From Utricularia gibba (taxonomy: Eukaryota > Plantae > Magnoliophyta): a stretch of 64,000 nt of DNA. Under the pieces are notes generated by a model. That model worked only from the letters and a program-made list of their open reading frames with translations. It was not told where the DNA came from and ran no database searches. Location: positions 1,302,001 to 1,366,000 of the forward strand of contig NEEC01000004.1 of the NCBI GenBank assembly GCA_002189035.1, given 5' to 3'. Shown here piece after piece: positions 2,805-10,201 of the stretch. A program made the position numbers and the translations under genes. Positions within the stretch are counted from its first letter, which is position 1. Each line of letters starts with the position of its first letter.

Positions 2805-3945
2805 AAAATATTTAGATTTTTTGGTAGTAATTAATTTTTATTTTTTGGGTAAAAAATAACAAAATTATAAATCACGGGTACTTTAATGGATGGTTGGTAA
2901 CATGTTCACACCAACAACAATGTCTCATACACAACTACCATACTTGATTCAACCTTTAAAGTTGAAATTATTAAAATAAGATTTAAATAAAATTCAATAT
3001 TATCTTTAACTTTTAACATATTTTATATTTTGTTTATAAAATTCTATTAATTAATAAAAAGATATTAATGAAATATTTTTGTTATTTCAATCATCAACAA
3101 TGACACATGTTGTTGGTCTTTAGAAGAATTATCACTCAAAAATCATCATTGAATAATTTTCATTTTTTAATTGACATTCACAAATATGAATTGTAATTAA
3201 GATAATAAAAAAACATAAATATAATTAGATAATTAATTTCAAAGATTATCATCATGCTAAAAAAATTGACAATCATTTAACAATCCCTTTATTAAAATCA
3301 ATTAATGTATAATTATCAAATCCATTGGACTGAAAAATAATGGGACTTTTTTATTTAAATAATTCTTTGAATTAATTTTGTTTAATATTTATCCGTTCTA
3401 ATTAGATAAGAAGTCAGATTTTGAAATTAAATTAAAAATTTATTAAAATTTTTGAATATATATATATAATGATTAAATAAAATATTAATTAAGAAAATTG
3501 TATTATTTCATTTTTACACATTTTCATCATATTCAATTATATAATGAGTATATTAAATTTTTATAATATATACTTATATTATCTCATAAAACAATTTTAT
3601 AATTATAAAATAAATTTTATTCTAAATAATTTGTAACCCACTTTACATTACCATTCCAATATGATCATTAAACTAATTTATTGAATTTTTGTATTATAAT
3701 TTATATATGAATGTTGTATAATTAGCTTGATAATATTTTTAATTCATAGTTGAGAATGTGAATATGGTGATTTTATAGGCGTAACATTTATTCAATAATA
3801 TTAAATTGAAAAATATTAATTAGTTATATAGTTTATTTTATGTAATATACCTTTTTTTTTTTTTGCGAAGGGCTCTGATCTTATGGCCTCGCCGGCTCCG
3901 ACGACGGCCGGGTCAGATGCATTTCAAGCCTCCGTACAAAGGAAT

Positions 3946-4574
3946 TTACACCTCCAGATTCGGGTGAAGATGATGAAGCAGACCCGATTTACTGCTACCA
4001 AAACCCTGTCGTTTCGCTGCCGTAGAGAAGCAACAAGCCTTGGGCGTCGCCCCCCGCTTCGCGATCCTCGCCCTCGGAAGAGTGCACGCCTTGTAGCTAA
4101 GCCCGTTGCCGCAGCTGTTGGAAGCCTTGAGAAATCTTCTCCTGTACGGACAAGTTTTCTTGGCCAGATCCTCGGCGCTTCTTAGCGAACCCGAGAGCGA
4201 TAGCGACACGAAGGACTCCGATTTGCCCTGGTAGAACTTGGACAACCCTCTTCTGCGCAAAATCAGACCCGTAAGAAAAGAAAAGAAGAATTTTATCGAT
4301 GATGATGTGCTGATTCGACGAGGCAAAAAGGAAGGAAGCTTATTTACTTGATGGGTAGCTGATTCATGATGTCGGAGAGGTCGGAGAGGGCTCCGCCGGC
4401 GGAGGGGGTCTCCAACGAGGATGCGTCGTCGTTGGTTTCCGTTTCCGATGAAGCGCCGTTGGAGTCGATCGACGAATCCTCGCCGATGGAAGAGGAGGTG
4501 GTGCATTTGTCGTCATCACGAGAAGAATAGCGAAACCACGAATCTTGGATTAGGAAACGAGCTGCGTCCTCCAT
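3946..4574 (-). CDS. OXS3: OXIDATIVE STRESS 3-like protein, 2 exons (4574-4348, 4252-3946)
   Basis: Splicing joins LSDIMNQLPIK to RGLSKFYQGKSESFVSL, the OXS3-family motif. Ser-rich N-terminus. Phase-2 GT-AG intron 4347-4253. Confidence 0.88.
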
Positions 4575-4807
4575 AGAAATCTCTTGGATTATGCCCGGAA
4601 TGAGATGAAACCAAATGAACGTGGGGAGAAGAAACAGGATGCGGTTTTGTAATGTGAATTTTGACCGGTGGGACCCCCATTTCCCCTAATTTTCTTTATT
4701 AATTAATTTCCCAAGTAAAAGAAAGTGACACGCGGCAGAAAAGTGATCGACAACACAGCGCTCCCGATTGGATAAGCTTCAGATGTCGTGGACGGAGAAG
4801 GGGACGC

Positions 4808-4856
4808 CACGTGGAGCAACGCGAGTGGGGTTTGTTGCGCTCCACGGTGACGTGAC
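4808..4856. promoter_or_regulatory. G-box (CCACGTGG) and ACGT-core elements upstream of the OXS3-like gene
   Basis: gccacgtgga near 4808-4815 and ggtgacgtga near 4847-4856, about 250 bp upstream of the ATG. Confidence 0.4.
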
Positions 4857-5996
4857 TCCCTTGGGGAGTTTTAAAGAGATAAAACCCGACGCTTTTTTGC
4901 GCTTATCCCTGCGATCCGATAAAGCTTGCGTGCTGGCAATTTTATCTGTTATTTTTTGCATTTATCCATTCATTGAAAAGTTGGCTCATTTCCCAGCAGT
5001 CAGCGGATGGGGGAATTCGCGCAGCACAGCAGCAACCAGATGGATGCAACGCACCAAGTCTAATATATTCAGATTAAAAATAAAAAAGGCAGCCCTCCGG
5101 TGTACGGAAGGGCTGTTGCCGGAGGGTCCATGGCTTCTGAAATTCTAGTTGAAGCAGGGTTTTCCAATGTTTGCTCGGGCAAGGGGGGAAAGGAGCAGGT
5201 TAGCGAAAGCCTATACATGGGAGAGTGGTGGAGCAGGGCAGGGCAAGTGGGGAGAAATGAAAGCGATCCCTCGTTTCGGATTACACGGTGGGCGCCGCCG
5301 AAGTTGAGGTTTGCCGTAAACAGGGGAACCGCTCCCGGAAAAGAGCCCGGAACACGTTCCTTTTTTGATAAATTATCAATTTGTTTTTAATAATGTTTTA
5401 AATATGGAAATTCTTAAATTTTCTTTGACAATAAAATTCTACAAAAAGACAATGATTATTCGATACAGGTTTCGTTAATTCTATGATTAAGGAAATTAAT
5501 CCAAAATTAAAAACGAGGAAATTAATCCAAAATTACGATTTTTCATGAAAATTATAGAATCAAATTTTGAAAACTAATTTTATAAACCCTAAAAACAAAA
5601 AAAAACCGCTTAAAGCATTTTGGGAAACGGTAAGACTCTAAAAATTACTTTTTAAAATTATTTTACTGGAGCTGTCCTAAAGACGGCTCTTAAATTTGGT
5701 TAATTATTATTCTATATTGATTATCATCATAATTCAAAACATTATCATATATAATGTAATTTATGGGCCGCATTCGGATTCATGTTGTGGGCCCAAAAAT
5801 GATACACAGTCCAACATGATATAGAGCCCAACCCAATAATAACTTTGAGAATTAGGGTTCACAATTCACGATTTCTTCGGAGCGGCACCATAGAAGGGCT
5901 GCGTATGTGAAAAAAACCAGGGTTCCATTGGGCACACCAGAGATTACGATATTGGGGGTCCCGAAAGGAAACGATCAGATAACAAAGCACGATGCA

Positions 5997-6150
5997 TAAT
6001 GTGAGGAAGATGATTGTTGAACAGATTCAATAGATGAAATGAATCACAACTGCCCATCTTCCCCTGGAAATTCGATTTCGCAGAGAACACTTTCGAACGA
6101 GGTGCACTCTGAATTGAATTCGCACCACGCCGATACACACAATCTCTGCA
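5997..6150 (-). ncRNA. Box H/ACA snoRNA, predicted double guide for 18S and 25S rRNA pseudouridylation
   Basis: Two hairpins: GCAGAGA/UCUCUGC and GGGGAAGAUG/CAUCUUCCUC. G-U pairs work only on the minus strand. ACA (6002-6000) directly follows hairpin 2. Both pockets are complementary to conserved rRNA sites. The H box is non-canonical (AAAUCGA). Confidence 0.8.
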
Positions 6151-6264
6151 TTTCATCAACACGAATAAGAACGGGGACCGAGAGATCGCAAGAAGGAAAC
6201 CACAAAGAAGCAGAGAAAACAAAGAAATATGGAGAAGGACGCAGGCTGCGCACCTCGGAGGACG

Positions 6265-6290
6265 TTTAAATAATCGGCTGGGTAGGGTTT
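6265..6290 (-). promoter_or_regulatory. Telo-box (AAACCCTA) plus TATA-like TATTTAAA, likely promoter of the snoRNA host transcript
   Basis: Minus-strand AAACCCTA 6290-6283 and TATTTAAA 6272-6265, followed by a donor-like GAG|GTGCG at 6253 and a pyrimidine-rich tract. Confidence 0.5.
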
Positions 6291-6616
6291 AACAAAAAAA
6301 AAAAAGGAAAGGAGAAAGTCCCAGAATACCACTCCTCTACCTGCATACTGAGGCAAGAAAATATATTGGTTTTAGGGGTAAAGTGGGAATTTGTTGTACC
6401 ATGCCTTTTTTGTTTTGGATTTCTTAAATTGAAAAATGAAACCCGACCCGTTCTTTATTGAGTGGACGGACTACAGAAAAACATTGCTGCCTTCTGATGG
6501 CAGATATGAAGAACGCCCTGAAGAAGAAGAAGATCCTAAAGACGCTGCCTTATTGTCTGAAGGAGAGCTCTGTAACTGTTGAAGGATGCGCAAGATCAAC
6601 CGGGTGGCGAAGATGA

Positions 6617-7389
6617 TTAAAGGCCTTGATCGATAAGGTAATCTCCCAGCTTCTCCACGACCAGATTGCACTGGCCAGGAGTCATCGGCTCCTCGTACAC
6701 TCCCATGATCAGTGCTTGTGCAGTTTTCTTCACGGTGATCCCACCGGAGCCCTGAAACGCCACCAGATCAACGCGAAAATGTGAGACTGTAGTTATATCA
6801 CTGCTCTGCAAGACTGAAGCACGGCCGGGTGATCAAGAAGTGCACCTTTTTACCACGAATCACAGCCCCTGGTTCTCCTTGGATAACCATGTACTTGGCA
6901 CCACCAAGGTAGAGTCCGGTCGGAGCAAGGAACCCCGGCTCGTCGAAATCCCTAACAATGTTGGAAATCTCCTCTGCTTTGAACTGCAATCAATGATCCA
7001 GAACCAACGTATTAACTATCATGACACCTACAATGGCATCGCTAAAATGCTTGATTGTCAATACTACTCCATCATTTTGTTGAGGACAGTGGTGCGTCGA
7101 AATGAAGATCACACGATCAAGTGAAGAGCTGGAGTCGTGAAGCAGATGATTCAAATCAAAAGTCTATGAGGAAACACCTTCTACAGTCATATAGAACCAC
7201 CCAACTTTCTCGGAGAAAACAAAAAAAAAAATTCCATGACTAAAAAAAGTTTTTTTTGTTTCCCACCTGCGGAAATGTAGCGCTCTGAGCCCATACACTC
7301 CCGTCGACGCCTATGATCGCGGCGGCGGTGAGATGGACGCCCTCGACGTCGCACATCAGGTGATCGTCGACGTAATTCTGCCAAGACAT
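6617..7389 (-). CDS. PRF: Profilin, 131 aa, 3 exons (7389-7267, 6983-6846, 6751-6617)
   Basis: [13 protein letters not shown]...WAQSATFPQ|FKAEEI...[28 protein letters not shown]|[10 protein letters not shown]...[12 protein letters not shown]. Exon lengths 123/138/135. Confidence 0.98.
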
Positions 7390-7622
7390 CCCAACCCCTT
7401 ATCCGAAAATTGGTTTGGTGATCGATTCAGAAACAAAGTTCTCCCCTGCAACGAGAAAATGGTGAATTAATACCGACGCTTTATGGAGAAGGAGAAGTGG
7501 CATCCACCACCATCGCCACTGCTTCCCGACTTTAATGCCCGTCGATTTGAACGGGTGCGCGCACAATGCCTCCGCCCTAAGGAATACTGCTAATTATAGC
7601 ACTTCTTTCATCCCTCTCCTCC

Positions 7623-7643
7623 ATTATTATTATTATTATTATT
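7623..7643 (+). repeat. (ATT)7 microsatellite
   Basis: Read directly. Confidence 0.85.
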
Positions 7644-8276
7644 AATTTCATTATTCTTTGCAGAAATTAAATCGCAATCAAAGAAAAGGATTTATTTAAT
7701 ATCTGCATTAATGCATATTTTATCAGCCAATGATAAATATTTATTTTCTAATTTGTTTACTCGAATTTAGCCTTGTTCCTCATTTAATTTAAATTCAAAA
7801 TAATACGCAACAGAAAGCATACGATTTTGGCCTTCAGCAGTAACTGTACAGGGAACACACGACGCAAGGAATTTAAAGAGATGAATTCAAAGTTTCAAAC
7901 ATTCGAGTTTTGTGTTTAAACGCCAACTTCTTTTCTGGAAAGCAAGATGCGATTCGAACACCCGTTTCTTTTTTTGTTGACCAATCAGCGATTGGCCGGT
8001 GACGCGACGCTGCGCAACTTCTGTGGCCTTTCTTATTTTTGACGAACTGGAGACATGGAGTCAGGTCAGAGAGGAATAGGGTAACAGGGACGGCAGCGAT
8101 TGCTTAATAGTCAAAGGAATACCCGATTTCTGTGAAACCCAGAATTTGTTTCCTTTTATGAAGTGGGTTTTTCAGATTATTTATGTTGGTTATGTCCGGG
8201 ATTCAGATGGAGGATGAAGGGGAGGTGGAAGAGTGATCATGTATTGGTTTGATTGATTCAGAAGCCTGGGGTGTTT

Positions 8277-10201
8277 ATGGGGATCAAAGAAAGAAGGGGG
8301 AACCCTGAACTTTTGAAACTTGGATTAGGTTTGATTTTATCACTTGGTGGGATTGTTTTCACCTTTTTAAATCACAGAAGAGTAAAGTCACCGGATGCAA
8401 ATCTTCCTGGTAAGATTTTTGTTTTGCAGGGTTCGTTTTTCTATGCGTTTTTATCATGTTTTGTGCAGGGGAGGGCGGGTACTCGAAGTTGAAGAAGGAT
8501 CATCATCAGTATCAGGTATGCATCCAGATAGTTATGATTCTGTATGCCTGAGCTTATTTGGAAATTTTCATTTATACAGGATGATGACTCTGGTGCAGAG
8601 GATTCTTCTCCAAACGCCCTTCATGATCCTTCCTCGAGTAATAAGGATGGCTTTTTATTGCCTGAGTTTGATTTGCTCGTAGAGGCGTACTCCATGGGAG
8701 ATGAAGCTCCATGTAGAGTAAATTGGCCGTGTCCTGTTCCGGTCGCCGAGGCACCTGAAGGAGATATGCTTTCTGAAGAAAAGGAAGATGGGAACAGGAT
8801 TAGGAACCTGGAGAATAAGGTCATGTCTCTTGAAGCCAGGGAGAAGGTCCTTGAGAGACAACTGCTTGAGTTTTATGGTTTTAAGGAGCAGGAGATGGTT
8901 ATCAAGGAGCTTCAGGACCGGCTTCGAGTACATAATTCGGAAGCCAAAGTGTATCAGCTGAAAATCGAATCCCTCCAGGAGTGCAACAGGAAGTTAGAGG
9001 CAAGAGTTGCTGATTATACGAAAGTGGTGATGGAGTTGGAAGAAGCAAAAGCCATGCTGAAGGTCCTGAGAAAGAAACTTCGGTCTGAGGCGCACCAGAA
9101 TAGGGAGCAGATTTTAAATCTTCAAGAACGAGTGATGAAGATGCAGGAAGAGCAAATGGGGGATCGAAAAAACGTTGCGAATTTAGATGCAGGGTCTGAT
9201 GAAACCAGGGAGCTGGAGATGATGAAGAAAGACAACGAGAATCTGAAGATGGAGAACTCACAGTTGGCTTCTGAATTGGAAAAGATGCAAATCCTTGCCA
9301 CATCTGCTTTAGACAAGCGACGGGTAAGTCTTGTCACCACCTTTCTCCCATAGATTTCAGATTCGACTATTTCCTCTGCTGGCTGTGATGAAATGATATG
9401 CCACAGGTTGAGGAACTGGAAAGAGAGAATGGGCATCTTGCAGAGCAAAACAAGGCTTTGAACGAGGAAATCGAGCGACTACAGACAGATCGGTGTGCTG
9501 ACGTCGAGGAGCTTGTGTACCTCCGATGGGTAAATGCTTGCTTGCGGTATGAACTGAGGCACTACCAACCCAATCCTGGGGAGACCACTGCAAAGGATCT
9601 CGGCAGAACATTGAGCCCCAAGTCGGAGGACAATGCGAAGCGGCTTATACTCGAATATGCAATGAGAGAAGGCGCACAGGAGAAAGCATTGAGCTTTGAT
9701 TGCAGCCAGTGGCATCCTGATATGCTGCCATCTGCAGAGCTGTCACTCAAGAAGCCAGACTCTTCAAGGCACTCTACAGTATTTGCAAAGCTGGCAAAGA
9801 TATGGAGAGAAAGGGACAATAGGGATCATGATCAGAAACCTGCTGATGACAGCATTGTAGCCGGGGAGGTGATCAACTTGAAAACACCTGGTGCATCGTC
9901 ATTACCCTCACACAGATCTTCCTTCGACCACCATGGGTCAGATTCAGGATGGCAGATGAGCAGTACCAGTGATGGAAGCACCCCTTTCTCCCGAAGAACA
10001 AGTGAAGATCACGACTTGACAATATTTAGGAAAATCAGCAGCGTCCGAGGAAGTAATGACAGTTCATCCACAGCCTTTCCACCTCAGGAAGATTCAAAAG
10101 ACTCATTTAGAGATGAGCTGGTGAAGTATGCAGAAGCCCTGGAGATATCCCATCCGATGCCCCCGGCCCGCCGGAGGTCAGTCCAGTTTAGCTCTTTTTG
10201 A
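8277..10201 (+). CDS. CHUP1-like coiled-coil protein, 4 exons (8277-8409, 8469-8515, 8580-9323, 9407-10201)
   Basis: Hydrophobic N-terminal anchor (LLKLGLGLILSLGGIVFTFL), LLEFYGFKEQE, long coiled coil and the CHUP1-family motif DVEELVYLRWVNACLRYELR. Exon phases are consistent. Confidence 0.9.

Follow-up and report, generated by a model that had tools for sequence, protein, structure and literature searches.

A solitary snoR135 box H/ACA snoRNA gene in Utricularia gibba and a candidate guide pocket for 18S Psi1630

We analysed a 64-kb stretch of the Utricularia gibba genome (64,000 nt, hereafter the window) and found that its minus strand from 6152 to 5997 almost certainly encodes a member of the snoR135 family of box H/ACA snoRNAs (Rfam RF01431). 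The explanation that we favour as a whole, to which we assign a probability of roughly 0.8, is that this snoR135 orthologue forms its own transcription unit and serves as a dual guide of 25S Psi2181 and 18S Psi1630. The locus itself is an ordinary representative of a curated and already catalogued family, and its novelty is low: Arabidopsis snoR135 was described and validated by northern blot in 2009–2010, hence the Utricularia gibba RNA is not new. What is plausibly new is the fit, predicted in six plant species, between pocket 1 and an 18S pseudouridine that has no listed guide.

Materials and methods

Since the window contains no rRNA, plant rDNA was fetched from other assemblies. Bacterial genome assemblies were scanned with a 25S motif, which returned many contaminating eukaryotic rDNA units, ten of them with an angiosperm 5.8S motif. 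The target scan used the 18S, 5.8S and 25S of three units (L080, L063 and L071), delimited by Rfam; the rRNA scanned is therefore plant rDNA contaminating bacterial assemblies and not that of Utricularia gibba. Every uridine (about 1,170–1,200 per rDNA unit) was scored against each pocket; pairing was counted along the arms starting at the upper stem, and two nucleotides at the top of the pocket were kept unpaired. We also let the pocket register vary over 216 combinations with arms no longer than 10 nt, which gave many higher-scoring sites; we regard these as a multiple-testing artefact because all of them need the conserved upper stem to be unfolded. Metagenome rDNA contigs, of which 42 were recovered via the angiosperm 5.8S motif and the long ones were fragmentary or chimeric, were left out of the target scan because none extends to 25S position 2181. 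A scan of viral contigs for the 25S motif gave one match, which was not used.

The search for rDNA yielded two observations in their own right. More than 100 bacterial or archaeal assemblies (among L043–L162) carry eukaryotic rDNA contigs as assembly contamination, and at least ten of those contigs have an angiosperm-type 5.8S, including those of the leaf-nodule 'Candidatus Burkholderia' L045 and L080, whose rDNA is probably that of the host plant. In addition, metagenome contig L029:1-3045 is a chimera in which plant rDNA (18S, 5.8S and the beginning of 25S) is fused to a bacterial coding sequence resembling acyl-CoA synthetase.

Orthologues were fetched via the genomic surroundings of OXS3-like homologues, and Arabidopsis snoR135a/b were represented in comparisons by the Rfam consensus. 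Assembled contigs of four Utricularia gibba RNA runs, which are unstranded, were aligned to positions 5500–7600 of the window.

Results

The Rfam scan of the minus strand matched RF01431 with 117.3 bits (gathering score 45) over model positions 1–143 of 143. A preliminary description, made from the sequence alone, had proposed a two-pocket plant H/ACA snoRNA, possibly of a known family, and had suggested a covariance-model search of Rfam; this search named the family with a match over its full length. The same description had called the snoRNA hidden, which holds in that the gene is small and non-coding, but Rfam detects snoR135 at once. Its motif coordinates for the minus strand are exact in every case, and it had placed the RNA correctly downstream of profilin: the profilin exons precede snoR135 on this strand, and their stop codon is at 6619–6617. 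The features of the locus and the positions of the orthologues are collected in Table 1.

Table 1. Features of the snoR135 locus in the window, and positions of snoR135 orthologues in five other species.
Feature	Position	Strand	Basis or remark
snoR135 box H/ACA snoRNA, 156 nt by model boundaries	5997-6152	-	RF01431 and similarity to orthologues
Hairpin 1 lower stem, 5' half GCAGAGA	6143-6149	-	MFE fold; pairs with 6086-6080
Pocket 1 5' guide arm UUGUGUGUA; last 7 nt pair with 18S UACACAC	6134-6142	-	Unpaired in MFE and RNAalifold
Hairpin 1 upper stem and apical loop	6093-6133	-	Conserved stem base UCGG / (C/U)CGA
Pocket 1 3' guide arm AAGUGU; AAG pairs with CUU directly 5' of the target U	6087-6092	-	
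Hairpin 1 lower stem, 3' half UCUCUGC	6080-6086	-	MFE fold, RNAalifold
H-box position, AAAUCG then A (ANANNG, not ANANNA)	6072-6078	-	Six-species alignment
Hairpin 2 lower stem, 5' half GGGGAAGA	6057-6064	-	MFE fold; variable outer pairs, with covariation
Pocket 2 5' guide arm UGGGCA; pairs with 25S UGCCCA	6051-6056	-	Invariant in six species
Pocket 2 3' guide arm AAUCAU; pairs with 25S GUGAUU	6010-6015	-	Invariant in six species
Hairpin 2 lower stem, 3' half CUUCCUC	6003-6009	-	MFE fold
ACA box, directly after hairpin 2, 3 nt before the model 3' end	6000-6002	-	Rfam model
Unspliced precursor transcript, ~430 nt	5798-6224	- (inferred from the snoRNA)	RNA-run contigs
TATA-like element TATTTAAA, 120 nt upstream of the snoRNA	6265-6272	-	Sequence motif
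Telo-box AAACCCTA, 138 nt upstream of the snoRNA	6283-6290	-	Present in six orthologous loci
Profilin mRNA; CDS exons 7389-7267, 6983-6845, 6750-6617	6429-7551	-	ORF translations and contigs
OXS3-like (OXIDATIVE STRESS 3) gene, two exons, downstream neighbour	3946-4574	-	
snoR135 orthologue, Buddleja	L164:2822-2968		
snoR135 orthologue, Paulownia	L169:6233-6389		
snoR135 orthologue, Nyssa	L170:6185-6330		
snoR135 orthologue, Euphorbia	L166:3341-3491		
snoR135 orthologue, Ricinus	L172:3451-3603		

A permissive Rfam scan of positions 3500–8500 returned no other RNA family at the locus, SNORA70 (at E <= 5) and snR32 included. We considered a second snoRNA in the same transcript, and found none in that scan and no conserved block by BLAST of the 600-nt flanks. 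A C/D-box reading was considered as well, in which UGAUGA (6158–6153) and CUGA (5978–5975) flank snoR135; we take these boxes to be there by chance because no orthologue has UGAUGA at that place and similarity ends at the edges of the snoRNA. Elsewhere in the window, the only other Rfam match is a tRNA gene at 47889–47962 on the minus strand (RF00005, 72.2 bits), which has the anticodon loop CUGUUAA and is probably tRNA-Asn(GUU). On the plus strand, 8253–10201 holds two long ORFs in different frames (8544–9353 and 9398–10201) with much coiled-coil-like sequence, which resemble exons of a single gene transcribed divergently from profilin and possibly CHUP1-like.

The minus-strand MFE fold has the order hairpin, hinge, hairpin and tail, with both pockets formed and pocket 1 open (-50.4 kcal/mol, z = -2.9). 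The plus strand reaches -39.3 kcal/mol, 11 kcal/mol worse, in agreement with the strand that had been called earlier. [quoted passage not shown] Upper stem 1 is separated from the H motif by 14 nt, and upper stem 2 from ACA by 13 nt; that is, the boxes begin at the 15th (pocket 1) and the 14th (pocket 2) nucleotide, which agrees with the rule of 14–16 nt from the pocket top. The preliminary description had given these same distances, and they recur in six of six species.

Five of the six single-sequence MFE folds share this form of pocket 1, and Buddleja prefers an Rfam-style stem. The Rfam consensus structure draws another upper stem 1, GUGUAU paired with AUGCAC, which buries the 5' arm of pocket 1. 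We tried this stem as the working fold for hairpin 1 and rejected it because it breaks the box-distance rule and RNAalifold favours the other stem; it may represent an alternative conformer, as in Buddleja. A separate feature of the hinge (6066–6079, minus strand) is a small inverted repeat, GAAAU-CGA-AUUUC, from which the MFE fold draws a 5-bp mini-hairpin over the H-box position. This repeat is absent from the five orthologues.

No hexamer in the hinge fits ANANNA, and the box at the H position, which the preliminary description had already found atypical, has G and not A at position 6, which is usually conserved. The RNA contigs read the same as the genome, hence the variant is genuine. Four orthologues have canonical H boxes at the aligned position (AUAUCA, AAAUCA, AAAAUA and AUAUAA), and Nyssa has ACAUUG followed by A, with the same G at position 6 as Utricularia gibba. 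Since this G recurs in Nyssa beside intact pockets, we read it as a tolerated variant and not as decay, and the comparison across species suggests that the Utricularia gibba copy is most likely functional despite its ANANNG box. The 3' box is ACA in five of the six species and AUA in Ricinus, where it lies at L172:3598-3600 in an orthologue that is otherwise highly conserved (140.7 bits). As for the 3' boundary of the Utricularia gibba snoRNA, the model ends at 5997 and cross-species similarity at 5998.

In five other species, profilin lies upstream of an OXS3-like gene on the same strand and Rfam places snoR135 between the two. These syntenic orthologues score 115–141 bits against RF01431, and their loci show that the order profilin, snoR135, OXS3-like is common to asterids and rosids. 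BLAST of the 600-nt flanks limits similarity among the orthologues to 6154–5998. Pocket conservation in relatives had been named beforehand as one of the tests of the snoRNA reading, and the pocket arms are largely invariant in the six species. In the six-way alignment, both arms of pocket 2 are invariant, and so is the 5' arm of pocket 1 except for one inserted base in Buddleja. The 3' arm of pocket 1 reads CGA-AAG-nn-U, with AAG and the final U invariant and with UG, AA, AG, AG, UA and UG at positions 4–5; one of these two variable positions mismatches 18S in all species, and its neighbour pairs in four of six. The apex of hairpin 1 diverges in sequence and length, and the apical loops, hinge and flanks diverge too. 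Reading the alignment by eye, we see in the upper stem of Euphorbia a U-to-C change that is compensated by A-to-G on the opposite side of the MFE-type stem.

No profilin and no snoR135 occurs within 10 kb of the OXS3 homologues of Acer, Drosera, Coffea, tomato and Corylus, and these loci are probably paralogous. Two further observations concern the neighbourhood. The interval from the profilin stop to the snoRNA is 465 nt in Utricularia gibba, compared with 1.3–2.2 kb elsewhere when measured from the end of the called profilin gene. Moreover, tRNA genes of identical score lie a few kb beyond the OXS3 homologue at L165:15949-16022 (Acer), L166:14539-14612 (Euphorbia) and L172:18094-18167 (Ricinus); their anticodon loop is CUAAUAA, probably Ile-AAU, and the shared tRNA suggests further conserved synteny.

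Contigs of the RNA runs cover the snoRNA at 5859–6224 (X1), 5854–6203 (X2) and 5798–6171 (X4), X1 and X2 coming from one study and X4 from another, and over 5798–6224 they have no joints and no differences from the genome. RNA depth is zero at 6225–6428 in all four runs. The separate contigs and the zero depth between them place the snoRNA outside the profilin 3'UTR and in a unit of its own. The profilin contigs are spliced (introns 6751–6844 and 6984–7266, with the 3' end at 6429–6443), hence the libraries are RNA, and the depth of the snoR135 locus is similar to that of profilin in the same contig sets. What the contigs show is a precursor-sized transcript of ~430 nt, from which a mature RNA of ~150 nt would arise. 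The contigs start (6224) about 40–50 nt downstream of the TATA-like element. In the six loci, the telo-box is found 18–37 nt upstream of the nearest downstream TATA-like motif, and in the five orthologous loci the TATA-like motif stands 115–176 nt before the snoRNA.

In all three rDNA units, pocket 1 ranked the 18S site CUGCCCUU[UG]UACACAC first (score 25 versus 17–21 for the next site), and pocket 2 ranked the 25S site GUGAUU[UC]UGCCCA first (28 versus 20). When the orthologues' own arms were used, the same 18S and 25S uridines ranked first in six of six species. Both target strings put forward in the preliminary description thus exist in plant rDNA and pair as it had stated: pocket 1 with 18S through 7 bp and then 3 bp, a mismatch and 2 bp (12 bp in total), and pocket 2 with 25S through 6 + 6 bp. 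Across the species, 7 + 3 bp of the pocket 1 pairing are conserved, the 3' arm providing only three contiguous pairs. By experiment, guide pairing requires at least 8 bp and tolerates an uneven split, as in yeast snR81, which naturally has 9 + 3 (De Zoysa 2018); the predicted 7 + 3 conserved pairs of pocket 1 exceed this minimum. Shuffled guides reached the score of pocket 1 somewhere in rRNA in 58 of 2000 cases (2.9%) and that of pocket 2 in 1 of 2000. The complementarity of pocket 1, taken alone, is therefore only moderately unusual.

The numbering in the scanned units (U1633–1636 and U2191–2193) is offset from that of Arabidopsis. We take the scanned 18S site to be the equivalent of Arabidopsis U1630 and human U1692, in part from established knowledge of this conserved region, and because the sequence context is identical and an 11-nt spacing matches. 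This spacing separates U1630 from Cm1641 in Arabidopsis, as it does U1692 from Cm1703 in human (PMC8351944). 18S U1630, in helix 28, is a mapped pseudouridine corresponding to human U1692, with its guide entered as "nd" or "unknown snoRNA" (PMC8351944). 25S U2181, attributed to snoR135, is also mapped (Streit & Schleiff 2021, PMC8351944, Suppl. Table 2), and 25S U536, attributed to snoR135a/b, is predicted only, being unmapped and having no yeast or human counterpart (PMC8351944). By our own count from the tables of PMC8351944, about 78 of ~1,180 U are mapped pseudouridines, so that a top match would fall on a mapped site by chance in ~7% of cases; for the score and the mapped site of pocket 1 together, we roughly infer a joint chance of ~0.002. 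In a plant 25S, the region around 536 (505–575, wide enough for numbering offsets of at most 11 nt) is a GC-rich variable segment in which pocket 1 scores no higher than 7. A literature search for a guide of Psi1630 returned irrelevant matches only.

Published work on Arabidopsis bears directly on both pockets. Chen & Wu (2009, PMC2685112) describe snoR135 as a northern-validated RNA of 141 nt in the ncRNA At2g46192, inside a cluster; their target for pocket 2 is 25S Psi2181, the counterpart of Psi2191 in yeast (guided by snR32) and of Psi3674 in human, and they name none for pocket 1. According to Kim et al. (2010, PMC2875012), Arabidopsis has two copies in the cluster snoR157/68/159/145/135a/135b, with 25S 536 as the target of pocket 1 and 25S 2181 as that of pocket 2. 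The target named for pocket 2 in the preliminary description, yeast 25S Psi2191, hence corresponds to a published and mapped Arabidopsis site. Its suggestion for pocket 1, the equivalent of human 18S Psi1692, coincides with the mapped Arabidopsis 18S Psi1630, and our tests favour that assignment. Its statement that SNORA70 (U70) guides human Psi1692 agrees with two papers (PMC9610020, citing snoRNABase, and PMC13204842); a third gives the reverse, SNORA64 for 18S U1692 and SNORA70 for 28S U4975 (PMC7760958), which is probably a swap.

Discussion

We propose that snoR135 of Utricularia gibba forms a short, unspliced transcription unit of its own, read by RNA polymerase II from a promoter with a telo-box and a TATA element. 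The precursor is presumably trimmed to an RNA of ~150 nt, which would assemble with the dyskerin/Cbf5 complex. In 25S, pocket 2 (UGGGCA / AAUCAU) would then pair on both sides of the uridine that corresponds to Psi2181 in Arabidopsis, Psi2191 in yeast and Psi3674 in human. In 18S, pocket 1 (GUGUGUA / AAG, extended by two pairs in Utricularia gibba) would pair on both sides of the helix-28 uridine that corresponds to Psi1630 in Arabidopsis and Psi1692 in human. The scheme builds on what was observed of the locus, namely its family, fold, complementarity, conservation, synteny and transcription, and it extends to the mature ends, the assembly of the RNP and actual modification in Utricularia gibba, which it would predict. 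On the strength of base pairing and conservation, the predicted target of pocket 2 is very probably the equivalent of 25S Psi2181. For pocket 1, the equivalent of 18S Psi1630 is a likely target because it ranked first in an unbiased scan, the site is mapped, the pairing nucleotides are invariant in six species and the geometry is correct. We also lean, with a little less assurance, towards a broader statement: that hairpin 1 is the missing guide of Psi1630, replacing the U536 assignment, that the guides of plants and animals for this uridine are unrelated, and that the gene, with a telo-box promoter of its own, has stayed between profilin and OXS3-like across asterids and rosids.

Compared with known systems, Arabidopsis snoR135 as published has the same two-hairpin H/ACA layout and the same pocket 2 target, 25S Psi2181. 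The arms of pocket 2 match the snoR135 model consensus, as do those of pocket 1 except for one position of the 3' arm, which is a in the RF01431 consensus and U in Utricularia gibba. Other traits differ. The H box is AAAUCG in Utricularia gibba and AUAUUA in the consensus, and the apex of hairpin 1 is longer than in the model. The northern-validated Arabidopsis RNA is reported at 141–142 nt and comes from a cluster, whereas in Utricularia gibba and the five other eudicots snoR135 is a solitary gene with its own telo-box/TATA promoter. The proposed pocket 1 target, 18S Psi1630, also departs from the 25S U536 published for Arabidopsis; that older prediction is probably wrong.

Human SNORA70 guides the equivalent helix-28 uridine, 18S Psi1692, which would make it analogous in function to pocket 1. 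The two share only the target site, and SNORA70 does not belong to the family, the Rfam scan of 3500–8500 having detected no sequence or structure homology. Unlike snoR135, it has 18S 1232 as a second listed target, and its host gene is RPL10 (PMC13204842), whereas snoR135 of Utricularia gibba is driven by a promoter of its own. In yeast, the uridine that corresponds to the pocket 2 site is 25S Psi2191, which is guided by snR32; the locus has no Rfam match to snR32. At the 18S position equivalent to the pocket 1 target, yeast has no pseudouridine (PMC8351944).

The preferred reading has to be weighed against one in which the RNA guides only 25S Psi2181 through pocket 2, while hairpin 1 is structural, guides 25S U536 or acts on a non-rRNA target, and the invariant 5' arm of pocket 1 owes its conservation to pairing in the alternative upper stem of the Rfam structure. 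We consider this unlikely, though several points speak for it: Kim et al. (PMC2875012) give 25S 536 for pocket 1, the Rfam consensus pairs GUGUAU with AUGCAC and the Buddleja MFE fold adopts that pairing, the 3' arm retains only AAG, and 2.9% of shuffled guides fit some rRNA site equally well. However, U536 is unmapped as a pseudouridine and lacks a yeast or human equivalent (PMC8351944), and its variable, GC-rich surroundings score at most 7 compared with 25 for the 18S site. The Rfam-style stem would set the pocket top ~23 nt from the H box, outside the range of 14–16 nt, as opposed to 14 nt in the MFE and RNAalifold structures, and the compensatory change seen by eye in Euphorbia supports the MFE-type stem. 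Moreover, in six of six species the best site is an orphan mapped pseudouridine, which is hard to obtain by chance.

Doubt could also be cast on this particular copy, which might accumulate poorly or be a non-functional paralogue that has lost the H-box A while another copy does the work. No hinge hexamer matches ANANNA, the aligned box is canonical in four of the five orthologues, and redundancy is possible given the two Arabidopsis copies listed in PMC2875012. Yet the same position-6 G followed by A persists in Nyssa, and thus in two species, both guide pockets are intact, as is the ACA box, and a compensatory A-U pair is retained in the lower stem. The locus is also transcribed at profilin-like depth with contigs identical to the genome, and it is the syntenic copy and not a dispersed duplicate, which together make decay very improbable. 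A last possibility is that there is no RNA gene and that the hairpins arose by chance in intergenic or profilin 3'UTR sequence. Only the general caution that AT-rich spacers fold would recommend it; the 117-bit covariance-model match, five orthologues with similarity confined to the element, and a separate transcript, with the profilin mRNA ending more than 270 nt upstream, have already refuted that reading.

Our preferred reading, a dual-guide snoR135, matters chiefly for Psi1630, which is by our count one of 13 mapped 18S pseudouridines without a guide in Streit & Schleiff 2021 (PMC8351944). The residue lies in helix 28, the neck of the small subunit, at a site that is modified in humans too, and the conserved 7 + 3 bp fit of an expressed snoRNA offers a concrete guide candidate for it. 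The recurring ANANNG H box gives a view of the variation that the motif probably tolerates in plants, and the conserved order profilin, snoR135, OXS3 provides an easy route to the gene in unannotated eudicot genomes. If the pocket 1 assignment is true, the same decoding-region uridine would be modified by unrelated guides, snoR135 in plants and SNORA70 in animals.
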